64,000 bases of DNA, from the IMG/VR virus record IMGVR_UViG_3300049215_000771, positions 248,001 to 312,000 of that record; one strand, given 5' to 3'. The position numbers were made by a program, and so were the translations under genes. Of the stretch, positions 2,597-23,400 are shown piece by piece (position 1 is the stretch's first letter; the number at the start of each line of letters is the position of its first letter). The notes under the pieces were generated by a model. That model had not been told where the DNA came from. It did no database searches and worked only from the letters and a program-made list of their open reading frames with translations.

Positions 2597-3199
2597 ATGT
2601 TAGACGGCTTCCGACAATACTTTGAGAGTTTGGCCCACTACACGCCTCGTGAGAACGGGCTTGCTGAACTTGCTCGGCTGGAGAAAGGTCACTACTTGAT
2701 CGTCCAGCCAGCAGACATCGAGACTGCCCATCAATACCTTAATGGGGCAGATGGACTACGGCACATATCGAAGGATATGGTTGTGACGGCTCAGGACATT
2801 GACTTCATGTCCCGAACCACCAAGGAAGCGATAGTTATCATGCCCATCCCGAAACGATGGTTCCGACGACCGCAGCTTGAGCAGAAGGGTGTAACAGGTG
2901 TGATTGGCGAGTTGTTGCCCCTGGGGGATGGCTGGCACTTGCCGGCCAACTATGTGTGGGGCTACTTCTCCAAATGGAACGAGGACCAGGAGAAGATGGT
3001 AGAACCGGGCCAGTTCTATCGCAATCAGAACTACCACGGGCACGACGGCTTGTACGAACTTTGGAAGCGGCAGCATCCCCAGCAGGAGAGGCCACAGACG
3101 CTAGACCGCCCTACGCCGAGAGTAGTTGCACCGTATAACCCGACCATCAATCGGTCATTCCACGGTTACAACACATTCGACTTCGATTCTTCACAATAA
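2597..3199 (+). CDS. Hypothetical protein, possible head-internal protein
   Basis: 200-aa ORF; N-terminus MLDGFRQYFES resembles a T4 capsid-targeting leader. Confidence 0.6.
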   Translation: MLDGFRQYFESLAHYTPRENGLAELARLEKGHYLIVQPADIETAHQYLNGADGLRHISKDMVVTAQDIDFMSRTTKEAIVIMPIPKRWFRRPQLEQKGVTGVIGELLPLGDGWHLPANYVWGYFSKWNEDQEKMVEPGQFYRNQNYHGHDGLYELWKRQHPQQERPQTLDRPTPRVVAPYNPTINRSFHGYNTFDFDSSQ

Positions 3200-3813
3200 C
3201 ATACCTTGCCGCAGTAGACAAGTCGTCTCGCATCAATAAGCGTGATGCCGCCACCTGGCATACAGTCACAGTCCGTGACTCGATGTCCGATGGCTTGTTC
3301 TGTGAAATTCAAAATGAAATCAGAATGGGAAATGAAAACAGCTTTGGCTGGTGAGCGGGCCAGCACTTCATGGACACGCTGAAGAAACTCCTTCGGCGTT
3401 TCTTTGCCCATGCGACCCAGGTGCGGGTCTACAGAAAACTTCAGCCCTGTTACTTCCTCAATGATCCTGGCTGAGTGCCGGCATCGGACGTAAGGGCTGG
3501 TGAAGGCTTCAAAATCCGCCAGATCAAACTCGTGGGCCAGGAACTCGGCGGTCCTATATACCTGGCGCACTCCAACAGGTGTGAGGTTTGCCGGCAGCCT
3601 TTGCCCTGTTGCCTCCCCGTGTCGGATCAGAAAAATCTGCTTGAGATAGAAGTCGTATTCTTCCGTGAAAAACCTACCCGTTTCCGGGTCGAAGAATCCG
3701 CTTTCGATTGCACCATCTTGTTCAGCACAAGAAAGTTTCGAGAACGCATCTCCGTGGTTGCAGCCTGTAACTACCCTTCCGTTGGAGTACAAGGCGGCGA
3801 TATAACTCGACAT
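3166..3813 (-). CDS. Histidine phosphatase (phosphoglycerate-mutase-like) family protein
   Basis: LIRHG, SPYVRCRHSA and distal ISH motifs; about 55-aa extra N-terminal segment; GGAGG RBS. Confidence 0.85.
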   Translation of the reverse strand: MSSYIAALYSNGRVVTGCNHGDAFSKLSCAEQDGAIESGFFDPETGRFFTEEYDFYLKQIFLIRHGEATGQRLPANLTPVGVRQVYRTAEFLAHEFDLADFEAFTSPYVRCRHSARIIEEVTGLKFSVDPHLGRMGKETPKEFLQRVHEVLARSPAKAVFISHSDFILNFTEQAIGHRVTDCDCMPGGGITLIDARRLVYCGKVCYCEESKSNVL

Positions 3814-4954: not shown

Positions 4955-5326
4955 TTACTTCGGTCGATACTTGGAACATTTTTTATCCGTGACGATTGGC
5001 AGGAAGCATTGTTCATAGATGCGGTACACTTCGCTGTACGCTACACCCCATGATGCGTCATGCGACCGTTCTTCAAATTCGTCACAGGTCAAGGCATCAT
5101 GCAAGTGACTCCATGCCCTTGCGTGCGCCCACTCGTGGAGAAGTGTTTCAATGGCCGATGTTTCAGGTAGCTCTCTGTTGATGCGAATACAAAACTTATT
5201 CTCATTCAACGAACAGTCGCCGTCCCTGTGACACGTCATTTTTACTCGCCGCACCTTGATCGGATAGGCAGGCGAGCATTTTCTCTTCAACACGAGAACC
5301 AACTTCTTGTAGGATTCATATGCCAT
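4955..5326 (-). CDS. HEXXH zinc metallopeptidase-like protein (SprT/ImmA-like)
   Basis: IRIN...ETLLHEWAHA and distal H (RSHDASW); start MAYESY with GGAGGGG RBS. Confidence 0.7.
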   Translation of the reverse strand: MAYESYKKLVLVLKRKCSPAYPIKVRRVKMTCHRDGDCSLNENKFCIRINRELPETSAIETLLHEWAHARAWSHLHDALTCDEFEERSHDASWGVAYSEVYRIYEQCFLPIVTDKKCSKYRPK

Positions 5327-5337
5327 ATCCCCTCCAG

Positions 5338-5374
5338 GCAAACAAAAAACCCACGAGGAAATCCTCGTGGGTTT
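5338..5374 (-). terminator. Rho-independent terminator after the cREC gene
   Basis: 12-bp stem AAACCCACGAGG/CCTCGTGGGTTT, 4-nt loop, followed by a U-tract on the minus strand. Confidence 0.8.
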
Positions 5375-5380
5375 ATATAC
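5374..5380 (-). promoter_or_regulatory. Putative late-promoter motif GTATATA abutting the terminator 5' arm
   Basis: A transcript started here would begin inside the hairpin arm and could read into the HEXXH and GT genes. Confidence 0.4.
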
Positions 5381-5399
5381 TGCGTCAGAAACCAACATT

Positions 5400-5783
5400 T
5401 CATCGACGGATTTCTTCCAAAATACTGTCGATGCGGGCGGGAAGTTGGGTAAATGGCACCTGAATCACGTTGACGCCGCCCTGTTTGAGATACGAAACCA
5501 TGTTGCTGGCCCCGGCTGGGTTACAGCTATGGACCACAACAAGGTCAACGATGATCTCGTTATCGGCGATTAGTTTGGCAACTTCCATACCCGTGTCGCC
5601 ACGGTCGGAATTTACCATTTCTTCGCCGCCCAGGTCATGATCGAGAAACACCACATCGTACTTCTTCTTGAGAAGAAGATCGAAGGCTTCCGCCACGGTG
5701 TACGCCTCGTCATGCAACAGGATCGGCTTCATCTTCTGATGCCGATACTTGTTGTCGTCGAGGAACAAGATTCTAAATGCCAT
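5400..5783 (-). CDS. Cyclic-phosphate processing receiver domain (cREC_REC-like)
   Basis: ILFLDD, FLDHDLG, TG and VHSCNPAG motifs; no effector domain. Confidence 0.8.
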   Translation of the reverse strand: MAFRILFLDDNKYRHQKMKPILLHDEAYTVAEAFDLLLKKKYDVVFLDHDLGGEEMVNSDRGDTGMEVAKLIADNEIIVDLVVVHSCNPAGASNMVSYLKQGGVNVIQVPFTQLPARIDSILEEIRR

Positions 5784-6940
5784 TACTCCCCTTTCCTGGA
5801 AATCCGTTTCCGAAGACTCTCGTAGATGAAAGCCGCCCGCTCATCGACGGTATCACCGTCGTTGTTCCAAAGAGAGTTGATCGTTGCGCCGAGGCGTGTG
5901 CTGCCGCAGAAGTGGGCCAGACGCTCGGCGCACTGTTTTGCAGGTGGCAGCTTGCCAAAAACCACTCGATCATAGATGTAGAAGGTGAAAAACCCCGTCT
6001 GCTTCATGATCTTGCGCAGAACTTTGACGTTCACCTGGGCTGCGGCTTGCTGGGCGATCTGATTCCTGAGTTCAGAGTGGAAAACCAGGTAATCCTCGAT
6101 GGCGAGAGCAATCTCCTGGAGAGTCTCGTCGCTGACCTTGAACAGCGATTCCGCTTCTTCTTCGTGATTCTTGTAAGGCAACTTCGCCAATTTCCCGGCG
6201 TAGCGGCGACAGTTGTAGATCGTGTAGTGGGACTTCTGCAAATCTCGGCCCGCCATCTTGCCAGACTTGATGACCTTCTCTGTTCGGGCGTACACAAGTG
6301 CGGCGAGCGGTTGCAGAAAGCCACTCTTGCCGCCGATCAGGTTGCGGGCAGGGGCGCTAATCATGTTGGCGAGCCGCCCATTGAGTTTTGGGTCATACGG
6401 GTCGCAAGAGATGATATGTCCCAAAACCATGTCCGGGTTCTTCAGGAACCCGTCCTTGCTTTGGGGACGACAGTTTTCGAGGTTGCAATACAGTTCCGTG
6501 ATCTTGTCGGCGTCAAAAACCCGGCAAGAAACGATCTCTTTCTTGACCGAGTTCCACATTTCGTCCGAGGCCATCCAGTAAAGATAGAGGAGGAAACAGC
6601 AGCGATGGTGGTGCGAGGCCAGGGTCATGGCGTCCGTGTTTTCGGACTCGCCGATTGGGAATTCCCCAAGGGCTTCGATGCACAACCCTTTCTCGAACCA
6701 GCGAAGAATTTGCCCCATGTCGATGGGCTGACCACCACGATTGCGACCGTAGCCGCCGCAAAGCTGCTGAAGCAGCATGTGAACCACGACCTCGACCGTC
6801 AGAAGAGCAACAACCGAGTTGCTGTAGTTACCTCGCTTCATGGATTTGAAGTCGGGCATCGGCAGGAACTTCTTCGGCAATTCCCGCTTGCGGTTCTTGA
6901 ATTTCTCAGGGTTTGTGAAATCGGCGAGATACATTCCCAT
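5783..6940 (-). CDS. Hypothetical protein
   Basis: 385-aa ORF coupled to the downstream gene (TAATG); no recognised motif. Confidence 0.7.
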   Translation of the reverse strand: MGMYLADFTNPEKFKNRKRELPKKFLPMPDFKSMKRGNYSNSVVALLTVEVVVHMLLQQLCGGYGRNRGGQPIDMGQILRWFEKGLCIEALGEFPIGESENTDAMTLASHHHRCCFLLYLYWMASDEMWNSVKKEIVSCRVFDADKITELYCNLENCRPQSKDGFLKNPDMVLGHIISCDPYDPKLNGRLANMISAPARNLIGGKSGFLQPLAALVYARTEKVIKSGKMAGRDLQKSHYTIYNCRRYAGKLAKLPYKNHEEEAESLFKVSDETLQEIALAIEDYLVFHSELRNQIAQQAAAQVNVKVLRKIMKQTGFFTFYIYDRVVFGKLPPAKQCAERLAHFCGSTRLGATINSLWNNDGDTVDERAAFIYESLRKRISRKGE

Positions 6941-7061: not shown

Positions 7062-7685
7062 CTAAAATTCGTTGTGCTTCTGGAAGAGTACGTCGTGGAC
7101 GATCACCTTCTTCAAGTGATTCCCATACCGGCCCTTCCAGCGCTTTGCCATCATGCAGAACCGGCTGGTGTGTTCCGGGCGGTCCTCCCAAATTTCCAGA
7201 ACTTCCAGGTCTGAGTGAACGATCTCCCGCTCGATGAGTTCGATCTTGATCTCGAAAGTATCTCCGTGCTGCGGGTATCCCTTCATGCCACGGAAGTAAT
7301 ACTCGTCGAAGATCAGTTCCTTCACCGCCAGGATTTCCTTCACTCGATGCCGAATCTTGGCCGGACGACCCGTCATCAAGTAGCAGTTGGTGTCTTCCCT
7401 CGCCCGGTCAGCCTTGTAAGCAGCCAGCGTTTCAGAAATCCACATTTCCTCCGGGATCGGGTCCGGCACGAGCGGCGGCTGGAGCGTTTCGATCCGGCCC
7501 CACCAACCAGAAAACGGCCACAAGTTCCCCGTTTTCTCCAAGTACAGAACTTCTCCTTCGGGCCGATCCGGGGAGCGGAACAGCGTGCCGTCGAAGTCGT
7601 AAATGGAGGCACGGGAACGCTTTCGGACGTTCCGTGGAGCTTCAGCCCCAGGCAGCCACTTCGATAAGGTTTGTTCTTTGCTCAT
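7062..7685 (-). CDS. HAD phosphatase, Swiss-Army-Knife RNA-repair type (HAD_SAK_1-like)
   Basis: IYDFDGTLFRSP, WWG, LMTGR and IWEDR motifs; GGAGG RBS. Confidence 0.8.
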   Translation of the reverse strand: MSKEQTLSKWLPGAEAPRNVRKRSRASIYDFDGTLFRSPDRPEGEVLYLEKTGNLWPFSGWWGRIETLQPPLVPDPIPEEMWISETLAAYKADRAREDTNCYLMTGRPAKIRHRVKEILAVKELIFDEYYFRGMKGYPQHGDTFEIKIELIEREIVHSDLEVLEIWEDRPEHTSRFCMMAKRWKGRYGNHLKKVIVHDVLFQKHNEF

Positions 7686-7775: not shown

Positions 7776-8330
7776 TTACTTGCCGGCGTATCGAACCGTG
7801 ATGTCCATGCCTTCGTCGGTCGGGGTGATCTGGACCTGGAAACCATCGGGTCGGCGGGCGCTCATTTCGTTCATGGCGATAGCCCTAGCCTGTTTGATGG
7901 CCGAGTTCGGCTCGATATGACCGTGGACGTGGAAAACCCATGTGTTGGCCAGTGGGCGTTCTAGTGTGGCTTTGACGGTAGCATAACCACTACGGCCACC
8001 CTTCATCATGATGGTTTTACCTATTTTTTCCTTGACAGGTTCGGCTGGTGCGTCGGCGACATCGCTTTTGGGCATCTCTCCGACTGGCACACGAGGAGAT
8101 GTCCCATATGGCGTGTGAGTCGTGGCTGGATCGGCTGAGGCGACCATAGCGGGCCGGTCGGCGGCAGGAGAAGCAGGACGATTCATCAGTTTGTTCGCAC
8201 CCCAGGCGCTTGCGGCAAGTCCACCAAGGAGGCCCATTGTTTGTAGAAACTTGTTGTCCTTCAACGCCTCTACCAATTCAACATCCCTAACTTCCAACCA
8301 CTCGTTGAATGTTGGAAGTTTATTCTTCAT
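7776..8330 (-). CDS. Hypothetical protein with capsid-targeting-like leader and hydrophobic segment
   Basis: Start moved to MKNKLPTFNEWLEVRD; the longer ORF merely overlaps the upstream low-complexity tail. Confidence 0.6.
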   Translation of the reverse strand: MKNKLPTFNEWLEVRDVELVEALKDNKFLQTMGLLGGLAASAWGANKLMNRPASPAADRPAMVASADPATTHTPYGTSPRVPVGEMPKSDVADAPAEPVKEKIGKTIMMKGGRSGYATVKATLERPLANTWVFHVHGHIEPNSAIKQARAIAMNEMSARRPDGFQVQITPTDEGMDITVRYAGK

Positions 8331-10047
8331 CGCCGCCATCGTCATCTCCCTTGTCATCGCCAAATCCGTGGTGCTTCGGTTTATCGAATCCGTGCTTCGG
8401 TTTATCGCCGCCGAAGTGGTGCTTGTTTTCTTCGTGATCGTCATCGCCCCCGAAGCCTGGTCGCTTCTCGTTCCTGCCGAAAGCTGGCTTCTTCGTATCT
8501 TCTTCATCCGGGCCGCTGTGTTTGCTTCCCTTCAGCTTGCCGACATTATCCTTCCAGCGGTTGGTAGAAAGATGGCGTTTGACATGATCGAACTCATGGC
8601 CGTGCGGTGCCCGACCCAAATGCTTGGTGTATGCAGGGTTGACAGACTTCTTGCCATCTTCGCCCTGGGTGTACGGAGACAAATCTTTGTCATCGTGACT
8701 CAAGAAGGCATCCGTCTCCGGGCCGACTTGCTTCGCCATTTGCAGCCACTCACGAATCTTGCTTTTGGTCAAGCCCGTGTGGGTGTTCTTCATGTCGTAG
8801 AACTGGTCAGGGTCATATTTGTTCTTTGCGCCCCAACTGTAGAGTTTCACCAGGTAAGCAATATCGCTGGCTTCTTGCTTGCTCCAGCCACCACCAATGA
8901 GCATGTTTTTTACATCTTCAGGCTCGTTATTGCGCAGTACCCAGGCCGGGGCGAGCCAACGGTCGCCACGAAAATCTTCTGGCATATCTTCTTCGTCAAA
9001 ATCAACGCCTGGAAAAACGGCGCTGAGAAGTCCAGTCTGCTTGAAAGACTTCATGTACTTGCGTGGGTCACTGTCCGGGTGTTCCAACCCATCCAGGAAC
9101 TCCTTGCGAACGTGGTCCTTCGGCACATCCTGAAGATCACGATGTCGTTCAAGGGCTTGTTTGTATTTGTCAGGAATCTTATCGGGGTTGCCGTAACGAT
9201 TTAGTTGCTTCATATAGCGCAGGGCCGTTGCCGGGTCTTCGCCTAGACGCTTGTTGAAATCACCAACAGCCACGACCTCGCCGTTCTTCAAGTGGTGAGC
9301 GCCGCCGTGAGGGTCCGTCAGTTCCGAGTTGTCGCCGTCTGCCGTGGTCAACGGAATGTACATAGCGTTCATCGTGAAGTCACGGTTCTGCGAATCATCT
9401 TCAATCGTGGATGCCGCTTCGCCTTTTTCTGCTTGTACTCGTCGGCTTTTTGGGTGTTTGCTGAGGGTGGCCAAGTCGAACTTTTCGCCGTTGATCTCGG
9501 CAGTCATTTCTATTTCCTTACCGGCTTTGTCCCAACGAGAAGCGTAGAAAATCTTGTTCTTTGTACCTGGGGCGGGGAGTTTGGCGTAGCGTTCATCCGA
9601 GGCATATTCGCCGCACCGTGGTTTTGTTTCGGTGAAGCCTGCATCGGGTTGAACGAGGATCATGCGCATTTCAGAAGGGGTGGCATCCGTCACCAGGTCG
9701 TAGTTCCTGGGGGTCTTTCCCTTCAGGTGGTCACGAACAGCACCACCTGTTAGCCACAGGTTCTTCTTCTTCAACTGTGGTTCTACTTCACCCTTGGTCT
9801 TCTCAATAGTCGTATAGCCAACGCCGACTTTATCGCTGTCGGTGAAGGCTTTGATGAGAAGTCGTAGGTTCGGGTGAGTCGTTCTGTTCACAGTGAACGG
9901 AGCGAACTCCTTGGAACCTTCAGTCTTCTGAAGTTTGATCTTGGACGTGATCTGAGGACGCTTCGGGCCTTCGCTGCCGCCACTGCTGCTGCTTCCGCCT
10001 TCCGCCTCTTCACGCAATGTGAAATACTTACCAAATAGGGTTTTCAT
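8320..10047 (-). CDS. Class II tRNA nucleotidyltransferase (CCA/poly(A) polymerase) homologue with altered catalytic motifs
   Basis: GGAVRD..NYDLVTDA, NRDFTMNAMY, EDPATALR; no HD domain; low-complexity acidic/His/Gly C-tail. Confidence 0.85.
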   Translation of the reverse strand: MKTLFGKYFTLREEAEGGSSSSGGSEGPKRPQITSKIKLQKTEGSKEFAPFTVNRTTHPNLRLLIKAFTDSDKVGVGYTTIEKTKGEVEPQLKKKNLWLTGGAVRDHLKGKTPRNYDLVTDATPSEMRMILVQPDAGFTETKPRCGEYASDERYAKLPAPGTKNKIFYASRWDKAGKEIEMTAEINGEKFDLATLSKHPKSRRVQAEKGEAASTIEDDSQNRDFTMNAMYIPLTTADGDNSELTDPHGGAHHLKNGEVVAVGDFNKRLGEDPATALRYMKQLNRYGNPDKIPDKYKQALERHRDLQDVPKDHVRKEFLDGLEHPDSDPRKYMKSFKQTGLLSAVFPGVDFDEEDMPEDFRGDRWLAPAWVLRNNEPEDVKNMLIGGGWSKQEASDIAYLVKLYSWGAKNKYDPDQFYDMKNTHTGLTKSKIREWLQMAKQVGPETDAFLSHDDKDLSPYTQGEDGKKSVNPAYTKHLGRAPHGHEFDHVKRHLSTNRWKDNVGKLKGSKHSGPDEEDTKKPAFGRNEKRPGFGGDDDHEENKHHFGGDKPKHGFDKPKHHGFGDDKGDDDGGDEE

Positions 10048-10127: not shown

Positions 10128-10592
10128 TCATGGTGTTGGCGGCGCTTGCCAGCCAAACTTGTAGAGTAGATAGCCGCCCAAAATCATGAACAAGACCTTC
10201 AAGACCCAATCGAAGATTTGATTCATGCGTGTGTCGTGGTGAGATGTCTTGAGTTGGATTCCTTCCAGCTTCAATTCCATCACTTGCAACTTACCTTTCA
10301 ATTCTTCTACCTTGTTTTGGAGGAGATCAAGTTCTTTCTTGGTTTCGCCTGTGACATCTTTCGTTTCGAGGATGGTAAGTCGTTGGGTTACGGAGTGTTG
10401 TAGTTCCATGAATTTATCCAATCGCTCGTCGAGAGCATTCTGTCTTTCTACTAGCATCTTGACCCGTTCATCTATCCTTGACGTAAGATCGAACACCAAC
10501 TTAATGGATTCAGACACCTGGGTATAAAACTGCTCTGCAATCAAGGCTTTTTCTTCCGTGCTTGTGCTTCGAGTGGGCATATTTCCATCCAT
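10128..10592 (-). CDS. Coiled-coil protein with C-terminal TM helix (XhlA/holin-like architecture)
   Basis: Long heptad pattern followed by WVLKVLFMILGGYLLYKFGW. Confidence 0.6.
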   Translation of the reverse strand: MDGNMPTRSTSTEEKALIAEQFYTQVSESIKLVFDLTSRIDERVKMLVERQNALDERLDKFMELQHSVTQRLTILETKDVTGETKKELDLLQNKVEELKGKLQVMELKLEGIQLKTSHHDTRMNQIFDWVLKVLFMILGGYLLYKFGWQAPPTP

Positions 10593-11224: not shown

Positions 11225-12565
11225 ATGAAGTTCAATACTAATAGTTGGTTCAAGCGAAAACTTCTCGAAGCTGGCGATCCTGCCGGCAACGCAGATGGCA
11301 ACCCGCCAATGGGCAACATGGGCGGCGGTCCAGGTGGGTTTGGTGCTGCGCAACCGCCACAGCCAGGACAAGACCCGAACGTAGCAAATCCAGCGATGGC
11401 GAAAACCCCCGACGCCGGCCAAGGTCCAAACGATCCATCCAAATCAGGCCAACAACCCGATGTTTCCGGTGATCCTGCGGCTCCTGACATGCCGGATGAA
11501 GGCGACGAGATGGACTTTGAGCAGTGGAAGGACTCGTACTTCAAAGAATCCGTCAAGGGCGATGTCAACAAACTGATTGACATGATCCATCAAGTTCGTG
11601 ATCTCGAACTCGACCCATATCCACGGAAGTTTGTTGAGGACAATTTGCAGATCGTTTTCTTGCGCCAGAACGCCAACATTGACAAGGCCAGCAAGGAAAT
11701 CCGCAAACTCATCAAGCAGGAACTCGATCAGAACAACCCATCTACAACCCTGGTCAACCATATCACCACTGTTCTCCAGCAGATGCCAGAACTTAGTAAT
11801 GTGTTCATCAAGTTGAAAGGGTTGCTGGGCATGAAGGGCGATTTGCATCGTAAATACATTGCCGCTTTGATTGGTGGTGTTCAGGTCGGCACGGGCGGCA
11901 ACGCCGAAGATGTAATCTACAACGAGAAAGACTACTCGATCCGTGTCTCCACCAGGTACAACGACCGCTGGGGCCGAGTTGACATCGGCAAATGGGCGTT
12001 GCGTGAAGACGACCCGGAGCGTTACCTGTCCGAGCCTGAGTTGAAGCGATTGGAAGGTGAAGGTTCGCCGGGTGAGAAGGAAGAACTGCGCAAGCGCATC
12101 GTTGTGGAATCCATCGCCGAGCAGTTCAAGCAAAGGGCGTTCATTGTGAACGTCGTTGGCAAGAACGGAACTGTCTACACCCTGGGCTGGGACTTGGCTG
12201 GCAGTTTGAAGGCCGCTTACACGGCGGGCAAGCTGGTAGTGAGAACCATTCAGGCCGAGAACTCGGACTCCATGATTACGGATGACGGAGAGATCATTCC
12301 GTATGTTGACATCAAAGTTCGCTATATGAAGGAAACAGGCGGACAGGATGAGGATGGCAAGCCTGAGAAGGAAGAACACGATTTCCTGGAAAGGATTGAC
12401 GGCACCTTGTTCCTTACTTCTCGATTCAACATTTTGCGTGAGGCGGCATCCAGCTTCCAGGGTATTGTGTTGAAAGAAACCCCCTACACCGGCAACCCTT
12501 CTGACTTGAGGGTATTGCAGCGGTGTGTGCCGAGCGCTCCTGAAATTTTACTGAGGCAGTGCTAA
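11225..12565 (+). CDS. Hypothetical virion/prohead-associated protein
   Basis: MKFNTNSWFKRKLLEA leader, Pro/Gly/Asp-rich linker, then a globular region; upstream ATG 11186 also possible. Confidence 0.65.
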   Translation: MKFNTNSWFKRKLLEAGDPAGNADGNPPMGNMGGGPGGFGAAQPPQPGQDPNVANPAMAKTPDAGQGPNDPSKSGQQPDVSGDPAAPDMPDEGDEMDFEQWKDSYFKESVKGDVNKLIDMIHQVRDLELDPYPRKFVEDNLQIVFLRQNANIDKASKEIRKLIKQELDQNNPSTTLVNHITTVLQQMPELSNVFIKLKGLLGMKGDLHRKYIAALIGGVQVGTGGNAEDVIYNEKDYSIRVSTRYNDRWGRVDIGKWALREDDPERYLSEPELKRLEGEGSPGEKEELRKRIVVESIAEQFKQRAFIVNVVGKNGTVYTLGWDLAGSLKAAYTAGKLVVRTIQAENSDSMITDDGEIIPYVDIKVRYMKETGGQDEDGKPEKEEHDFLERIDGTLFLTSRFNILREAASSFQGIVLKETPYTGNPSDLRVLQRCVPSAPEILLRQC

Positions 12566-14498: not shown

Positions 14499-17400
14499 AT
14501 GGCACAAGTTCTTGACAGTTTTGGGCGTGCTGCTGAAGACGCAACAATGAGTCTGAAGCAGCTTCGTGAGTTAATCAAGTCGTTGGCTCAGGGCAAAGTT
14601 GGCCCGCCAACGTCTCCTGGACAGGCTGCGCAAGATGCTGGCGTAAAGATGCCGATGCCGACCCCGGATGTCAAGCCCGATCCAAACAGTGTCGATCCCA
14701 AAGTCATTGAAGAAATGCGTGACATTTTGAAGGAGTACAAGAAGGATTGGGACAAGGAAACAGATGATGCCAAGAAGCACGTCGAGGACACTGTTGATCT
14801 CCTGAAAAACATCGACCAGGCCAAAGAAGCAAAAAGCAAGCAACCCAAGGGTGTGGGGAAAGACAAACCGAGCAAAGAAGATGTCTCGATGGAGCATTCT
14901 CTTGCTCAGTTGGCGCATCATGGACTGAAGAAAGGTTCGATCCAGACGGCAGATTGGAAGATGTTCTCGCACGTTGTCAAGGCGGACGGCATCACACAGT
15001 CAAAGCTGGAACAAATCGTGCAGCTACTTGACAAGAGCGCCAAAGTTTCCAAGGGTATCAAGCCCGGCACATTCAAGGTTGAAACCGACTTGAACCTGTC
15101 TACAGTGAAAAAGCAAGTCGAGAAGGAAGCCCCCGGTGCTTACAAGGCTGGCAAGACAAAACGAGACGACAGCTACTCGGCTCACCCAGCGCACAAAGCC
15201 CTGGCCGAGATGCGACTTGAACCATTGGTGCGTGAACTTTCCTTCATGAAGGAAGTCCTCACGAGTATAACTGGCGTGCTGGATAAGATGCAGGATGCCT
15301 TCTTTGGCTTCAAGGTCGGCGAGACGTTGTTCAAGGGTATTGTCAAAGAAGAAACCAAGTTCATCCGTGATGCCCGTGCTGCCGCCTACGAGACAGCCGG
15401 AATCACTAAGGAAACTCGTGCCCTGCAACGAGCCTACGAAGACATCGGCACAACTGCCGCCATCACGGGCTTCAATCGTACCGAGTACCAGAAAGCCTAC
15501 CTGAAGACCTTGAAGCGTGGCATCAAGGATTTGGGCACGGTCAACAAGATCACCCAGGCTCAACTCAACACCGAAAGCCAGATCGGTGTCGAGGCCGGTA
15601 CTTTGAGCGATGAGTTCGCCAACTGGCACACGCAGATGAGGTTCAACGCTGGCCAGGTTGCCGAAATGGGACGTGGAGTTCGTGATGTTGCCAAGTTCAC
15701 TGGCATCACTGGCGAGAAGCTGGCACAAGCCGTCAAGAGCAGTGAGCAGTTCATGACGACGATGCGCAACGCCGCCACATTGACAGCTTCCGCAGCGAAG
15801 AACATCATCGAGATTCAGGCTGTTTCTCAGAAGATGGGTACTGCTGACACAATGGCCCCGCTCATGAAGGCCATGACCAGTACCAACAATTTGATCCGAG
15901 AGGCATCCAACCAGACTCGTGCCTTGTTGATTAACGCCGCCGCCAAGGTTGGTCGTGTTCGTGAATTGATGATGGGCACCATCCTCCAGTCCAAGGCCGG
16001 TATCAAGGACATGGCGAAGGGTTTGGAGGCTAACCTCCGCATGTTCGGCGTCAATAGCATCGAAGAAATCGACAACCTGAGCGACGAGGCCAAGCAGCGG
16101 CTTAACCTCCAGTTGAAGGCTGCTTTTGGCATTGAACTTGGAGAGATGCGTCAAACCATCGAAACCCTGAAGGAAGCTGGCAAGGGTTTGGGCGACCGCA
16201 TCGCCGACATCAACAAGAAACTACAACAAAACGTCACCATCGAGGAGCGTAAGGCTTTGGAAGAACAGAAGCGGGCTATGACCGCTTCTGCCAGCTTGTC
16301 GGTTTTGAACGCCCTGGACGAAGCAGCCAAGGGTGCCCAGGACATGAACCAGGCTCTCGCCAAGTTTGGCACTCGCCGCAAGCAGTTCCAGGATGACCTG
16401 AACGCAATGGGTATCACCGCTACGGACAACGCTGATGTTGCCCGTCAAGCCATCGGTACGGCCCTCGCCAACATCAACCAGTCTTTGAAGGCTGGCGGTA
16501 AGCAGGAACTCAAGATCGACTCGTCGCAGATTGAGAAGGCACTGCAAGACCCGGTTGCGTTCCGTGAGCTACAAGCACAACTGACCAAGGCTGAACAACA
16601 AGCAGCAACGGCTGCCAAGGCCCAGCTTGATCCGGTGTCGGAGATCAGACAGAAAGTCAACGAGATCAACGACAACATCAGGAATATGAGCCAGAACGTC
16701 ATCAGCAAGCTGATGAATAGTATGTTGGGCAAGTTGGCCTTCATCGCCATTGCCATCATGTCTGTCGTGTCAACGGTTGGATTGTTCCTGATCGGGTTGT
16801 ATATGCTCAAGAGGGAACTTGGCACCATGTTGCAGTTCGTCGGGCCGTCCCTGATGAAGATATTCGATCTATTCAAGTCAAAGTTGTTCGGAGGCGGTCC
16901 AACGACCCCGGCTCCTAAAGGACCGACCACACCTGATGCCGCACTCGATATTGTGGATAAGAGGAAGAAGGAAGGAAAAGAAAAAACAACTGAAGCAGAG
17001 AAAAAAACCAAAACTCCTTGCGATCCATGTCCACTGCTCACAGAAATAGTCAAATTGTTGAGTGCTATCAAGGATTGTGTTTGCCAGGGTAAGGAACCGA
17101 CCATCAAAACTGCTGTTGTTGATTCCAAGGGCAAGATCATTCCTGAAGAAAAACGGGCCGAGGCTGCTGCTGGGATGAACAAGTACCAGGGCATGACACA
17201 AGAGCAAAAAGCGACAGAAAAACTGAAGGAACGCAAGGGAGTCACGACCCCAACTGCGGCTCTGCCGACTCCGCAGACGCTACCGAAAGCTACAGAAACA
17301 ACGGCTGCAATGCCCAAGAAGGCGGAAGCTGCTGCTGGCGCTGCGGCCACGGCGGTCAAAGAAAAAACAACTTGTGACACCTGCCCAATCCTGAAAGAAA

Positions 17401-20400
17401 TCGCCGGCAGCATCAAGGCTTTGGACCCAACCATGAAGGAAATGGCTGGCAAAGTTGCTGCATTGGAACCAGTCGTCAAAGCTATTGATCCTTCTTTGAA
17501 GGCAATTGCTTCGGCTTTGGCCCCGCTTGCCGACATCAAAACACTTCTCGATGCCATCAAGCAATGTGTGTGTCAGCCAAAAACCGAACAAGCTACCCAG
17601 GCTGCACAACCAGAAGCCAAGAAAACAACAACCACGCCAGCGGCAACAGCACAGGCAACGGCTACGGCTGCTGCGACTGCTCCTGCGAAGAAGATTGAGG
17701 GGTTGGAAGACCCAGCGGTTGTCAAGGCCAAGCTGAAACAGATCAACAACGACAGCAAGCTCACGACTGTCGAGAAGAAGATGCAGACGAAGGAACTCGT
17801 CATGCAGCGCAAAGAAATCATCATGCAGAAGAAGGCGATTCCTTTGCAAAAGCGTGAGATTGCAACAGAAAAAGCACGGGAGGGTTTGGTCAAGGGCCAG
17901 AAGAAGGAAATGGCTAAGGCCGAGCCAGCAGAACCACCACCAACTGCACCTTCTGGTGGGTGGGACTTGGAATCCCTGAAGAAGTCTGGACCGGAGATGG
18001 CTAAGACAGCCGCCGCCATTTTGATTATGGCCGTGGGTGTTGTAGCCCTTGGTGCGGCTATTGTCTTCCTGTCGCACAAGGTCATCAAAGCCTTCAACCT
18101 TGACATGAAAACTGTGCTGGAGACTGCGGGCATAGTTGCAGCTTTGGCAGGAGCCGGCGCAGCCATCGCCGTCGCAGCTTATGGTGTCATCGAGGCATTG
18201 GAAAGCAAAGAAGTCCAAGACTTTGTTGGCAAGGCGAAGAAGGGTTGGAAAGACCTGGCTAAAACCGCCGCTGCCATCCTCATCATCGGACCAGCCGTTG
18301 TGCTACTTGGTGCTGCCGTTGTTGGAGCTACTGCCGCCATCCTGAAGGCTTTCAACCTGAATCTTACCACCGTAATTGAAACGGCGGCGGTTGTAACTGC
18401 TGTTGCTGGCGCTGCTACTGCTATTATTGTGGCCGCAAGTAAGGCATTGGAGTGCATGGAAGAAATGAACTCCCTGCCGGGTGCGAAGAAACTGATGCAG
18501 AATCCTGTCAAGATGGCATGGACGATGGCGAAGGCTGGCCTGGCGATGCTTATCCTAGCCCCGGCCATTGTATTCCTGGGTGCTGCTGTCATCAAGATGG
18601 CTCAGTGGATATTGGGAATCTTCAACCTCGATGCTAGGACGGCGATGGAAGTTGGGGCCACAGTCGCCGCCGTCATCCTGTCTGCCGGTCTAATTGCTGG
18701 TGCCATCATTGGTGCCATGTTCGGGTTGTATGGCCTGGGCTTGCTGGTTGACTGGATGTACTCCGATCCGACTTTCATTCCGCATATCACCCAGGGCGCA
18801 ATCGCCTTGTTGATTCTGGCCCCGCTCGTTTTGCTACTGGCAGCCGCCGTCACCAAGTTCGCTCAGTGGATTCTTGGAGCCTTCAAACTATCTGCCAAGG
18901 ACGCCCTTGACACCGGCATGACTGTAGCCGCCGTCATAGTCGGGGCCGGTTTGATTGCCGGTGCCATCATTGGTGCGATGTACGGATTGTACGGCCTGGG
19001 CTTGCTGGCGAAATACGCCATGAAGTACGCCTGGACGATAGCGATGGGCGCTTTGGCTTTGCTCATCTTGACGCCAGTGATGATTAAATTGGCCTTGGTA
19101 ATCATCGACATGGCGAACTCCCTGATCGACCTGTCGCCGAAGGATGTTGAAAACATTGTCAACAAGGTCACAGCTTTGTTTGAAGGAGCCGGCAAGATAG
19201 CCTTGGCTGTATTGTTGGCATCCGGTGCCCTGGCCTTGCTCGGCATGGCTGTAGCATCTGGCTATATTCTTTATGCCGCCCTCATGATGGGTCTTGGCGC
19301 TTTGGCATTGCTGGTTTTGACTCCTGCCATGATAAAGATGGCGCTCGCCATCCTCAACATGGGCAAGGAGCTAACCGAAAGTATCTCCCTAGAAGAAGCC
19401 AAGAAGATCGCCGAAGGTGTGAAGACAATCTTCACTGCCGCTGGTGATGTTGCAGGTGCCGTGGTAGACATGAGCGGTTATCTGTTGAAGATGGGTTTCC
19501 TGTCCTTCTTGAATTTGTTTGGATTTGTTACAGGTTTGTTGAACAAGGGCGCAGCGTTCTTCTTCGAGATTGCGAAGCCAATCGGCAACTTCGTGATGGG
19601 GTTGATGGCAATGGGCAAGGCCATGACTCAAACGATGCCGATGGATCAGGCAAAGAAAACAGCCGAGGGCGTCAAAACGATCTTCGAGTCTGCTGGTGTC
19701 ATTTCCGACAATGTTCAGTCCTCCGTGTGGTCGTTGATTAAGATGGGATTCCTTAGCATCCTCAACAGGGGTGGTTGGATTACCAGCTTGATGGATGCCG
19801 GCGCAGGCTTCTTCATGGATTTGGCTAAACCAGTTGCCAAGTTCACCTTGTCGATTTTGGCGTTGGGCAAGGCTATGTCGCAAGCTATCGACCCGGCCAA
19901 GGCACGAGAAATTGCCAAGGGCGTGAAGGACATTTTCGATGCAGCGGCAGCCGTCAACCAGTCGCTAACCAGCCAGATGAGTACCCTCATCAAGCTGGGA
20001 ATGCTTTCCTGGTTCTCGTTCCTGATTCCTGACCTGGACAAAGCAACCGAATTCTTCATGTCGCTGGCGAAGCCGGCTATGAAGTTCACCCTCATTCTGA
20101 TTGCCCTGGGCCGTGCCCTTGTTGCTGCTGCTGGTGGTCCGAAGAAGATTAAGCCGTTGATTGAAGGAATCAAGGGTATTGGCGAGATCATTGAGGCAGT
20201 CAGCAAGATCATGGACATTCTCATCAAGAAGATCGTGCCGATGACTCAGGCGAAATGGTTCGGCTTGTTCGGCTCGTCTCAGCTTGAAGATTTGGCTGAC
20301 GCTGTGCCGAAGTTCCGGGCGTCGTTCGAGTCAATCACGACCTTCATCAGAGATGGCATCATTATGCCGATCAGGAGAACTTTCAGGAACACGGCGCAGA

Positions 20401-23400
20401 TTCAGAAAACCCTCGCCATCGCCAAGGGTCTGGCCGACGCTATGCAGGCGGCAGCCAAGATCATGGATACAGTCATCAAGTCCGTCCTGCCGTTGACTCG
20501 TCCGTGGTTCCTGGGTTGGTGGGGTAACAGTCGCCTCGACGATCTGGCAGATGCGATTCCGAAGTTCCAGAAGTCGTTCGAGAAGATTGTTGATTTCATC
20601 AAGAACGCAATCATTGAACCGATCAGGAGTGCTTTCCGAAACACCAAGAAGATCGCAGCGGTCATTGGTGTTGCCAAGGCGATTGCGCAAGCAATGCAAG
20701 CCGTTCTGCCGATGGTCAACAGCGTCCAGAAAGCGGTTTCGGACTTGACGCAGGCCAGGGGCTTCTTCAGCTTCATTGGCATTGGCGACTCCAAGATGGA
20801 ACAGCTTGAGAAAGCAATACCAGGATTCCAGGGAACCTTCCAGAAGATTGTCGATTTCGTCAAGAATGGCATCATCGAACCAATCCGCCGTGCATTCCCG
20901 CACCTGAAGAAAGTGCAGCCGATCATTGCCATCGCCAAGGGCATTGGCGATACGGTGCTTTCTATCGTCAACATGGTTGACACAGTTGCGAACAAGTTAG
21001 TGCCAATGACAGAACGTGGTGGTATTTGGGCCAGCATGTTCGGTGACGCCCGCTCGCAAATGGAGAAGATCGACGCCTTGCTCACAGGAAGTTTCCAGAA
21101 AATCTTCTCCAGCATGGTGAACTTCTTGAAGAACGGCCTTATTGGACCAATCACCAGTGCGTTCCCGAACCTGCAACAAGTCAACACGATTCTTCCAGTT
21201 GTCAACGGAGTCGGCAATGCCGTCACTGCCATTGCAAACATGGTGGACGCCCTAATCAACAAGTTGATGCCGCTGGCTGAGAAGCCTGGTTTTTGGGGAA
21301 GGATATTCGGCGAAACAAAATCCAAGTTCGAGCAGTTGGAAGAAGTCATCCCGACCATCGGGGCGATGTGGAGCAGTATTGTTTACTTCGTCCGTGACGG
21401 ATTGATTGGTCCAGTTGTGCGTGCTTTCCCATGCCTGAAAGAAGCCGAATCGCAAATCAAAACTGTTGAATTGGTTGGCAAGTCCATAAAAACAGTTGCC
21501 GATGTCATGGAAACAGTAAAGGAGATACAGCAAAACATCGACCCGCTGGCCGGTATAAGGTCTATCTTTGGCGACATCTTCCCCAAGGTGAACCCGCTGG
21601 AGAAAGCGATCCCGATGATCCAGGCTACCTTCATCGCCATCACCAAGTTCGTGAAGGAAGGTATTATCGAGCCAGTTCAGTCAATGGATGCCAATGGCTT
21701 GAAACAGTCCGTCACAAAACTGGAACAAATGAACAAGGCGTTCCAACTCATGCAAGACCTGGTGGATAGTCTCCAGGGCATGATGGGCATGACAGAAGGG
21801 GGCACCGTAAGCAAAACCACCGGCCCTTGGTACTGGCGGACCACGGTTGTCGAGAAGGTTGATCCAATGACGGACAAGCTGCAAGCCGCCATCAAGCCGA
21901 TTTCCGATACCTTCAAGAAGATCACTCAGTTTGTGCAAGATGGCATCGTGGTCCCTGTTTCCAAACTTGATGCTGGCGACCTGAAGAAAACCGTCAAGAT
22001 TTTGATGTGGATGGCATTGGCGCTAGAGAAAGTTCCAGAAGTAATGGAGAACCTGGGCGACGTTCTGAAGATGTTGAGTCCTGATGGCAACGCACTGCAA
22101 AGCCACCTTGCAACTCAAATGATTAACGAAATGCAGGGTCGCTGGAAGGGTTGGTACAAGTGGGTCTTCACGGGTATGGCAACATTCATCAAGGACGGCA
22201 TCATGGACCCGATCTTGAAGAATCTTACCGATGTGAAGAAAGTCAAAACCGTCGCCAAGATTATCATGGCAGCGGCTATAATGCTCGACAAACTTCCAGA
22301 CATGATGGAGAACTTGGGAGATGCGCTCAGGCTGTTGAGTCCTGATGGTAACGCACTACAAAGCCACCTTGCAACTCAAATGATTAACGAGATGCAGGGT
22401 CGCTGGAAGGGTTGGTACAAGTGGGTCTTCACGGGCATGGCAACATTCATCAGGGAAGGCATCATAGACCCAATCTCCAAGGAACTCACGGACGTTAAGA
22501 AGGTCAAAACCGTCGCCAAGATCGTTGTCGCCGCCGCAATGATGCTTGAAAAACTTCCAACGATGATGGAAGGACTTGGCAACGCTCTCAGGCTGTTGAG
22601 TCCTGATGGCAACGTACTGCAAAGCGCTCTCGCAACACAGATCATTAACGAGATGCAGGGTCGATGGAAGGGCTGGTACAAGTGGGTCTTCACTGGCATG
22701 GCAGCATTCATCAGGGAAGGCATCATGGACCCAATCTCGAAGAACCTTACCGAAGTGGATAAAGTCCAAACCGTAGCTAAGATTCTGGTCGCTGCCGCCA
22801 CCATGATGACCAAGCTCCCGCCTGTCATGCAGAACCTTGGTGATGCACTCAGGCTGTTGAGTCCTGATGGTAATGTACTCCAGACCGCCCTCGTGTCGCA
22901 GATTCAAGGAGAAATGAACGGACGCTGGAAAGGCTGGTACGCCAAGACCTTCACCGACATCGCCAAGTTCATCAGGGAAGGCATCGTCAACCCGGTGTTG
23001 GGAGAACTCTACGACGCCAAGACAATCATGACCGCCGCCAAGATTCTGGTCGCTGCGGCGCAGATATTGACCGTTCTGCCAGTAGTCATGCAGAAACTCG
23101 GCGATGCACTCAGGTTGTTGAGTCCTGACGGAAACGTACTGCAAAGCGCTTTGACAACGCAAATGCAGAACGAAATGGCCGGACGTTGGAAGGGCTGGTA
23201 CGAGAAGACCTTCAGATCAATCGCCATTTTCATGCGGGAAGGTATCGTCAACCCAATACTGCAAGAACTGCCGAATGTCAAGGACATTGTGATGGCAGCC
23301 CGCTTGATGCGTGCGATGTCGGTTATCCTCACGTCACTACCGAGGGTTATCACTGCCTTGGCAAGTGCTATGGGCCTGATGTCCAACCCGGATTCGCTGC

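Follow-up and report, generated by a model that had tools for sequence, protein, structure and literature searches.

We analyzed a 64,000-nucleotide (nt) stretch of viral DNA, positions 248,001 to 312,000 of IMG/VR record IMGVR_UViG_3300049215_000771 (the window, i.e., the whole of this stretch), with a focus on one open reading frame (ORF) that encodes a homologue of class II nucleotidyltransferases, the family of CCA-adding enzymes and poly(A) polymerase (PAP), with rewritten catalytic motifs. The ORF occupies positions 8320..10047 of the minus strand, encodes 575 amino acids (aa), starts with ATG, has a Shine-Dalgarno-like site (GGGAAGGA) 6 nt upstream and contains no in-frame stop; we refer to it as the CCA-like gene. 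The source is a single phage contig of 532,729 bp (G000:C1; 52.7% G+C) from moss metagenomes that is complete by CheckV. The 575-aa protein matches the PF01743 domain (poly(A) polymerase/CCA head domain) with 69.5 bits (4.3e-19) and phrog_2244, 'tRNA nucleotidyltransferase', at 3.6e-25; the solved E. coli PAP I and CCA-adding enzymes match it at 1e-12 to 3e-12, and the NCBIfam pcnB/CCA models match far under their curated cut-offs. Megablast with the window's first 25 kb gave no match among 50,697 phage records, and the closest phage record at the protein level is a 595-kb uncultured phage (45% identity). Short contigs from three metatranscriptome libraries (moss/plant samples) are 100% identical to the ORF in a partial, low-depth tiling, which may reflect DNA carry-over and thus does not prove transcription.

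The fold of the protein appears to be that of a complete class II enzyme. An AlphaFold model built from 30 homologues has a predicted local distance difference test score (pLDDT) of 81, with most of residues 50-500 above 90; it is confident over residues 33-509, and residues 5-31 and 510-575 are predicted to be disordered. In a Foldseek search against the PDB, all of the top 46 significant matches were class II CCA-, A- or CC-adding enzymes, PAP I or related tRNA-processing enzymes, with E values down to 4e-12; the alignments span 400-540 columns and thus cover head, neck, body and tail. The head (Pol-beta-type) domain, residues 97-262 (9262..9759, minus strand), carries GGAVRD, an insertion of ~26 aa and motifs A, B and C. 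The helical neck, body and tail region, residues 263-509 (8521..9261, minus strand), aligns along its length with solved CCA-adding enzymes, in alignments of 430-490 columns with target-normalised template modelling scores of about 0.6, and in the model these tRNA-holding domains are matched in full-length enzymes that include the tRNA complex 5hc9.

In class II enzymes, three carboxylates hold the Mg2+ ions and an Asp/Arg pair in the neck reads CTP and ATP; in the Aquifex aeolicus A-adding enzyme, the carboxylates are D31, D33 and E74 (PMC3925840). In the CCA-like protein, the metal-binding DxD is replaced by N115-Y116-D117 (AAC TAC GAC; 9697..9705, minus strand), opposite DFD of PAP I; RRD of motif B by N221-R-D (AAC CGT GAC; 9379..9387, minus strand), opposite RRD of PAP I; and the base-templating EDxxR of motif D by E270-D-P-A-T274 (GAA GAC CCG GCA ACG; 9226..9240, minus strand), opposite EDPVR of PAP I. 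These three replacements had been read from the DNA before any comparison was made, and the codons, positions and alignments to PDB structures all agree with that reading. The strand EKFDLATLSK (9457..9486, minus strand) contains position 191, the third carboxylate (D here), which was equated with E74 of the A. aeolicus enzyme through an alignment to 1vfg, and S196, which replaces the Arg of ATFR. Apart from R196->S, the further replaced residues include D125->S and, in the neck, R280->K.

To place these changes in the family, we compared 145 sequences of the clade that contains the window protein to 41 active-type relatives, i.e., 16 canonical phage and 25 cellular-type sequences. At position 115, the first Asp of DxD, the clade has N in 127 sequences, G in 12, D in 4 and S in 2, and all 41 active-type relatives have D; at position 117, the second Asp, the clade has D in 132, N in 12 and H in 1 (D in 40 of the 41 relatives). 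The third carboxylate, position 191, is E in 44 members of the clade, N in 33, D in 14, R in 13, S in 9, Y in 8, H in 6 and other residues in the rest, compared to E or D in all relatives. The Arg of ATFR, invariant in the relatives (41/41), is S in 120 and G in 18 clade members; the first Arg of RRD, kept by 39/41 relatives, is N in 122 and G in 14, and 144 of the 145 members have N, G, S or T there; and the Arg of EDxxR (41/41) is T in 126, I in 7 and V in 5. Position 125 is S in all 145 members, and the conserved neck Arg at position 280 is K or N in the clade. None of the 145 members keeps the three carboxylates together: 56 have two, 82 have one and 7 have none. Given that the canonical D, R and R of the three motifs are found in 25/25 cellular-type and in 14-16 of the 16 canonical phage relatives, the motif differences are not chance variation. 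GGAVRD, D218, R222, D223, T225, N227, D245, GG248-249 and D271 are unchanged across all three groups.

The pattern of substitutions fits the view that metal-dependent nucleotidyl transfer has been given up in this clade: one carboxylate drifts to Arg, Tyr or His, another is a fixed Asn, and three to four arginines that would contact the nucleoside triphosphate (NTP) or the base are gone. A changed nucleotide specificity does not fit these substitutions, and as conservation has been lost even at the metal site, a transferase with a new specificity, which the sequence-only reading had offered as one of its options, is unlikely. Since the pocket combines newly fixed with retained residues, it is apparently still under selection, and we infer that it is a binding site, in the simplest case one for tRNA 3' ends, rather than a decayed cavity.

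The rewriting is an old and shared property. A word-indexed search found 276 homologues, of which the 120 listed are 50-87% identical and lie on contigs of up to 670 kb; an exhaustive search found 48 homologue clusters at E < 1e-30. Among 30 aligned sequences that are 52-86% identical to the window protein, 80 columns are invariant, and over 145 homologues have an uninterrupted reading frame. In a maximum-likelihood tree, every rewritten sequence falls into one clade with support of 100/100 and a stem of 0.72 substitutions per site, and this clade nests among canonical-motif orthologues at the same locus. The tree thus indicates that the rewriting arose once, in place, in one lineage of T4-headed huge phages. 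For pairs with unsaturated synonymous divergence, the ratio of nonsynonymous to synonymous substitution rates (dN/dS) ranges from 0.03 to 0.07 among the rewritten sequences, compared to 0.04-0.08 for the canonical sister clade; judged by these ratios, the whole rewritten protein is held by purifying selection as strongly as its catalytically intact sister. The suspicion that this is not a normal CCA-adding enzyme is thus borne out, as the changes, N-x-D and EDxxT included, are clade-wide, of single origin and maintained by strong purifying selection rather than private to one genome.

The canonical huge-phage orthologues (L034-L039, L045, L047-L049; P0122, P0124, P0128) are 36-48% identical to the window protein and share with it the synteny, the type of leader (MRKTFLEYLSLKEN...) and the N-terminal subdomain. 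With D-x-D, F-E-x-A-T-F-R, RRD and ED..R all in place, they resemble functional CCA-adding enzymes, and the window's clade is their derived sister. Two other separate erosions of DxD were observed in the leader-bearing family: L050-L054 have N-x-E or D-x-Q and retain the motif D Arg, and L036/L037 have D-Y-N with all other motifs canonical. Three other genomes of the rewritten clade also hold a separate canonical PF01743 gene of ~410 aa (L115, G004:C1:226299-226742; L117, G007:C1:205666-206097; L116, G005:C1:56243-56671); because rewritten and canonical genes coexist in these genomes, the two are not redundant.

The N-terminal extension of the protein is real, since GGAVRD begins only at residue 101; however, it consists of three parts, and only the first ~13 of the roughly 95 residues that the sequence-only reading had assigned to a leader form one. 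The leader, residues 1-13 (MKTLFGKYFTLRE; 10009..10047, minus strand), resembles the capsid-targeting sequence (CTS) of phage T4, with a predicted prohead-protease cut after E13 (L-R-E/E, the slash marking the cut). Its consensus is MKxLFxKYxxLRE; L/F-x-E is conserved, E13 is found in all 145 rewritten sequences and in 15 of the 16 canonical orthologues, and in the model the leader is a detached helix with pLDDT below 50. A Gly/Ser/acidic linker follows, residues 14-32 (9952..10008, minus strand; alignment columns 15-70; pLDDT below 50), which differs between homologues both in composition and in length (about 5 to more than 60 residues). The third part, residues 33-96 (9760..9951, minus strand), is a basic subdomain that is folded and conserved and is particular to the huge-phage family; an Atlas search with residues 30-98 matched only fragments of the same family. 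The subdomain is also present in canonical relatives, e.g., P0122 and L034-L039, and its median net charge is +6 in the rewritten clade versus +1 in canonical phage relatives. A leader that spans the whole 95-aa extension was ruled out, given that residues 33-96 are folded, conserved and common to canonical enzymes. Because leader and subdomain occur in orthologues with fully canonical motifs, they are older than the rewriting and independent of it. At the other end, residues 510-575 (8323..8520, minus strand) form the disordered tail that the sequence-only reading had described by its GDKPKHGF-type sequence: it is indeed present, rich in His, Gly, Phe, Asp and Lys, of low complexity and with pLDDT below 50, but it is private to this genome and not conserved. 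Similar His/Gly/Phe/Asp-rich tails (..HGFD.., ..FGHGFDHGDGD..) were seen on a small leader-bearing ORF that adjoins the prohead protease gene (G000:C1 about 334740-334900, minus strand) and on homologue P0010.

The CTS of T4 is MKTYQEFIAE. In the T4 internal protein IPIII, the first ~10 residues suffice for packaging; residues 4 and 7 determine the targeting and residues 8 and 10 the processing, and the cut made by gp21-type proteases follows a Glu (PMC9026906, PMC5694885, PMC9958956). The genome that contains the window has a T4-type head module with T4-like gene order at 330.9-340.3 kb. It comprises a gp20 portal protein of 855 aa (G000:C1 330903-333470, L072:2904-5471; PF07230, 253 bits), a 663-aa ORF, an S77/gp21 prohead protease (99.6 bits to PF03420), a coiled-coil ORF that at 299 aa has the size of a scaffold protein, and a gp23 capsid protein (289 bits to PF07068); neither the 663-aa and 299-aa ORFs nor the small leader-bearing ORFs have a Pfam or PHROGs match. 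The N-terminal half of the portal gene shows an intein splicing-domain match (PF14890) and helix-turn-helix-like segments. The S77 protease begins with ...LLIE-11, comparable to LIE-9 of T4 gp21 (PMC9026906), and the capsid propeptide holds LLE and MNE sites. The ClpP-like protein encoded near the CCA-like gene was considered as a prohead protease and ruled out, as the head module has a genuine S77 protease of its own.

The form M[KR]..F.E[WY]L..(L.E), with a Pro/Gly/Ala-rich linker behind it, recurs at the start of a dozen or more unrelated ORFs of this genome. Examples are MKTFYEWLHE, MKSFSEWMNE, MKTFLEWLKLREE, MRKFHEWVNLRLRE and MKTFSQFVGLKE, the last on an ORF that adjoins the protease gene. 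The leaders of the canonical orthologues of the CCA-like protein are even more T4-like (MRKTFLEYLSLKEN, MKTFKEYILLKEG), and the separate canonical CCA-enzyme genes of two relatives start with such leaders as well (MNFKQWLLTEE, MKFKNWLLKEEE). Taken together, residues 1-13 of the CCA-like protein are probably a T4-type capsid-targeting sequence that would mediate prohead entry and be cleaved off after E13. The idea of a capsid-targeting-like leader thus gains indirect support from the S77/gp21 protease, the T4-type head, the L-x-E with its invariant Glu and the same leader on unrelated proteins, but the leader has no connection to the rewriting, since the canonical-motif orthologues carry it too.

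A candidate for a second capsid-targeted cargo is o459 (11225..12565, plus strand), a neighbour transcribed divergently from the CCA-like gene that repeats the layout of its protein, with the leader MKFNTNSWFKRKLLE, a P/G linker of ~100 aa and a conserved body. The o459 family is unrelated to the CCA-like one, and its shared design is independent support for the CTS reading of the leader. No other neighbour is as conserved (50-78% identity over about 55 loci). The o459 orthologues all start with ..[AI][LI]E[ED]WLxE; behind this come a P/G/Q linker of ~100 aa, which is hypervariable, and the conserved body. An Atlas search gave weak restriction-endonuclease-like leads only, with scores <0.8. 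We also observed that the heptamer CTACATA is scarce in this genome (23 occurrences versus about 54 expected) and that 14 copies lie at most 23 nt upstream of the ATG of ORFs that encode 60 aa or more; the most common distance is 5 nt, and no Shine-Dalgarno sequence intervenes. Examples of such sites are G000:C1 202824, 211929, 237712, 352580, 367031, 485969 and 335104, and one site in the window lies upstream of 10624. Of the 11 genes closest to CTACATA, 7 or more start with a leader-type N-terminus. CTACATA looks like a promoter or short-leader element that moves with the leader as a cassette.

The CCA-like gene lies in a block of minus-strand genes, many of which have RNA-related functions. 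These are a class II aminoacyl-tRNA synthetase (aaRS) of the Asp/Lys/Asn type (120-1673; PF00152, 251 bits), a ClpP-like protease that is syntenic with the CCA-like gene in many relatives (1745-2347), a histidine phosphatase (3166-3813), a SprT-like protein (4955-5398), a cREC (cyclic-phosphate-processing receiver) domain protein two genes from the CCA-like gene (5400-5783) and a HAD_SAK_1 phosphatase with an intact DFDGT motif (7062-7685). A small 189-aa ORF, o189 (7776..8330), with the leader-like probable start MKNKLPTFNEWLEVRD, separates the HAD_SAK gene from the CCA-like gene; upstream of the latter, at 10128-10592, is a 154-aa coiled-coil protein (cc154) with a hydrophobic C-terminal segment and weak matches to DUF1664 and to a 'hemolysin' PHROG, which is syntenic across the family. 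The gene order o176-o211-o459-o172, together with cc154-CCA-like-HAD_SAK-SprT-o312-(HisPhos)-ClpP, is kept down to 30% identity, and HAD_SAK_1 directly follows the CCA-like gene in most of 55 syntenic loci. The genes for cREC, the 385-aa ORF o385 and o189 (5400-6940 and 7776-8330, minus strand) have no counterpart in 67 related loci and are insertions specific to this genome. No Pfam or PHROGs match was found for o312, o385, o189, o172, o459 or o211. Elsewhere in the window, a 4,553-aa ORF (14499-28160, plus strand) has no Pfam match at E <= 0.01 and no PHROGs match.

In jumbo-phage RNA repair, cRec and 'Swiss-army-knife' HAD proteins are described as opening 2',3'-cyclic phosphates and removing 3'-phosphates in concert with CCA-adding enzymes (PMC7824862). 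The present genome has three genes of the PF09414 ATP-grasp RNA-ligase family, at 93.6, 392 and 503 kb, none of them near the CCA-like gene; there is no RNA ligase in the CCA-like operon, and RtcB was not found in this genome. Its 56 tRNA genes form two clusters (G000:C1 145-121540, plus strand, and 472882-497080, minus strand). None of the 56 encodes CCA; almost all end in discriminator-C-T, so that C74 appears to be encoded and followed by T, and 69 of the 86 tRNA genes of two related huge phages have the same ends. A connection between these gene ends and the rewriting was ruled out, as genomes with the canonical enzyme have the same ends. The CCA-like gene is the only PF01743 gene in this complete genome, and hence the phage tRNAs would have to be finished by the host enzyme. 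Three of the tRNAs carry CTA, an anticodon that reads amber, a further one carries TCA, which reads opal (ARAGORN 'SeC'), and two tRNA-like genes have four-base anticodon calls (G000:C1 121393-121540, 491736-491826, 80837-80930, 13184-13278 and 55504-55586 for the suppressor-type and four-base genes); these tRNAs may serve stop-codon suppression or recoding late in infection.

Judged by its features, i.e., lost catalytic residues, a kept fold and ongoing purifying selection, the CCA-like protein would be classified as a pseudoenzyme, and it very probably no longer performs metal-dependent CCA addition. The reading that we prefer is that of a virion-packaged, catalytically disabled binder of tRNA 3' ends derived from a class II tRNA-nucleotidyltransferase homologue; as a whole, it falls somewhat short of an even chance. 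One ancestral event swapped the metal ligands (D115->N, with the third carboxylate left unconstrained), the NTP residues (R196->S, R221->N, R280->K/N) and the base residue (R274->T). Under the preferred reading, the leader would bring the protein into the prohead core, the S77/gp21-type protease would cut the leader off after E13, and the mature protein would be delivered with the DNA at infection. There is an even chance, in our estimate, that the protein binds tRNA through its body/tail scaffold, holds the 3' end in the remodelled pocket, which carries less charge, and makes an additional contact through the newly basic N-terminal subdomain. It may act as a binding or presenting factor in a phage tRNA-end repair set that would comprise the HAD_SAK 3'-phosphatase, cREC, the histidine phosphatase, the aaRS and the 56 CCA-less tRNA genes; its partner would be the end-healing enzymes or a rare tRNA-related target, and the actual CCA synthesis would be done by the host enzyme or, in some relatives, by a second phage enzyme.

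Several observations weigh against this reading. The window protein itself holds two of the three carboxylates, D117 and D191. In the pocket, D117, R222, D223 and D271 are still kept, and the residue fixed at position 115 is Asn rather than a random one, which would also suit some other chemistry. The net charge of neck, body and tail fell from +3 to -1, which does not favour stronger tRNA binding in that part of the protein. As for packaging, the CCA-like gene lies ~75 kb away from the head module, among RNA-metabolism genes, and its leader departs from the tightest consensus (F.EWL.L.E). Two pattern tests do support an enrichment of such leaders, as a relaxed pattern matched 51 ORF starts versus 26.7 +/- 5.4 in residue shuffles and a stricter T4-like pattern matched 7 versus 0.3 +/- 0.5; however, these figures overstate the significance because the patterns were refined after the matches had been inspected, and the shuffles control for composition only. 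Cellular tRNAs far outnumber the injected copies of internal proteins. T4 internal proteins are packed in tens to hundreds of copies (PMC9958956), so bulk sequestration of tRNA by the injected copies alone is stoichiometrically unlikely: that many non-catalytic copies could not shield the whole tRNA pool, and the protein would need either expression during infection or a scarce target, e.g., a defence effector.

The same conserved pocket could belong to a protein that is still an enzyme on the 3' ends of tRNA or other RNA and performs a one-metal or metal-independent transfer, uses a different nucleotide donor, or catalyzes a hydrolytic, end-trimming reaction. The replacements are indeed fixed rather than drifting at positions 115, 125, 196, 221 and 274; D117, R222, D223, N227, D245 and D271 have stayed in place; the phage lacks any other PF01743 gene and carries 56 tRNA genes without CCA; and the end-healing neighbours would logically supply an end-modifying enzyme. 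Conversely, the third carboxylate is unconstrained, 7 members are left without any of the three carboxylates, 12 have N at position 117, and three NTP-holding or base-templating arginines were lost together. To our knowledge, no class II enzyme works without these carboxylate and Arg residues. The separate canonical enzyme in some relatives suggests a different job for the rewritten one, and we consider continued catalysis improbable. The opposite extreme, a decaying gene or an annotation artefact without function, could be suspected from the loss of the catalytic motifs and from a low-complexity C-terminal tail that is private to this genome; it is refuted by the intact frame in the homologues, the low dN/dS, the 80 invariant columns and the conserved synteny, to which the RNA-library contigs over the ORF add weakly, and it has practically no chance of being correct.

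Two further explanations accept the loss of catalysis and differ in where, or on what, the protein would act. In one, it is a cytoplasmic, non-packaged scaffold for tRNA repair that gathers HAD_SAK and further healing enzymes at damaged tRNA ends, and the leader is some other signal, such as a ClpP degron, a localisation tag or a feature of translation initiation. This would explain why the gene sits at a distance from the head genes, among RNA-metabolism genes that include a conserved ClpP-like one, as well as the CTACATA-N5-ATG element that often lies upstream of leader-bearing genes, since leader and promoter may move together for expression; packaging, for its part, is a prediction from sequence. 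What makes the scaffold unlikely is the leader itself: its amino acids are conserved across orthologues that are 30-87% identical, although the adjoining linker is hypervariable; it fits the T4 CTS register (aromatic residues at 4 and 7, L/I-x-E) in a genome with a homologous protease, portal and capsid; and propeptides are typically laid out in this way, as a leader with a disordered linker behind it. In the other explanation, the dead enzyme is an anti-defence decoy or inhibitor that mimics a CCA-adding enzyme or its tRNA-bound complex and, just after injection, titrates a host effector that attacks tRNA 3' ends, such as a tail-cleaving nuclease or a CCA-modifying toxin. Packaged T4 internal proteins include an anti-restriction factor, IPI, directed against GmrSD (PMC9958956), and tRNA-tail-cleaving immunity exists in the form of Cas12a3 (PMC12851939). 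Furthermore, a low-copy injected protein suits a low-copy target better than the tRNA pool, and the three separate erosions of DxD in the leader-bearing family suggest that binding, not catalysis, was selected. Nonetheless, the decoy is purely inferential, as nothing in the sequence points to a protein target, and we rate it slightly below the enzyme in probability.

A more specific version of the preferred packaged-binder reading, which we regard as doubtful, is that T4-headed huge phages load proteins of the CCA-enzyme family by means of the leader and inject them, and that in one large clade this cargo became, once and irreversibly, a non-catalytic binder of tRNA 3' ends. Such a binder would act in the first moments of infection on a rare target, either by blocking or decoying immunity that attacks tRNA tails or by marking tRNAs for phage end-healing.

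The protein can be compared to several known systems. With class II CCA-adding enzymes and bacterial PAP I (PF01743; PDB 6qy6, 5hc9, 1miv, 3aqk), it has in common the head-neck-body-tail fold, and it retains GGxVRD, the R-D of motif B, N227, motif C (D..GG) and the Asp of motif D. Unlike these enzymes, it has Asn for the first Asp of DxD, replaced arginines in ATFR, at the first position of RRD, in EDxxR and in the neck, and an unconstrained third carboxylate, and it adds the ~26-aa head insertion, the 13-aa leader, the linker, the 64-aa basic subdomain and the disordered tail. It lacks three of the defining catalytic features (DxD, RRD and EDxxR), and an annotation as CCA-adding enzyme would be misleading. 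Some tRNA-binding subunits, e.g., ADAT3 and Trm6, are catalytically dead paralogues; like pseudo-nucleotidyltransferases, they have lost catalytic residues and kept both the fold and strong purifying selection. The parallel to ADAT3 and Trm6 is an analogy of principle only. Like the T4 internal proteins and Alt, the CTS of which is cut by gp21, the protein has a short leader with an MK start, aromatic residues near positions 4 and 7 and L/I-x-E, with unrelated cargo behind such leaders (PMC9026906, PMC9958956); homologous S77 protease, gp20 portal and gp23 capsid genes are present here as well, and the leader is found on several unrelated proteins. The differences are that the cargo is a 60-kDa tRNA-enzyme homologue, that the disordered linker is long and that packaging and cleavage are predictions. 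Jumbo-phage RNA-repair sets (CCA-adding enzyme, cRec, Swiss-army-knife HAD and ATP-grasp RNA ligases; Iyer et al. 2021, PMC7824862) have the same components as the present genome; however, these sets assume an active CCA-adding enzyme, whereas here the nucleotidyltransferase appears to be disabled and no ligase is close by. In the literature covered, which does not include every journal, we found no paper on catalytically disabled CCA-enzyme homologues in phages or on CTS-type leaders on such proteins.

Huge-phage 'CCA-adding enzymes' are routinely counted as working genes of translation or RNA repair (PMC7162821, PMC7824862). The results described here indicate that one of their clades, both large and widespread, cannot consist of ordinary CCA-adding enzymes and yet is conserved as tightly as the real ones, which points to a new function built on a tRNA-recognising scaffold. 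The canonical and rewritten orthologues at one locus would constitute a natural before-and-after pair for the conversion of an RNA polymerase-type enzyme into a binding protein. If the leader works as in T4, capsid-targeted delivery would extend to half-megabase phages and to tRNA-directed cargo, and MK..F.EWL.LxE followed by a linker would be a sequence rule that predicts the injected proteome of uncultured phages.

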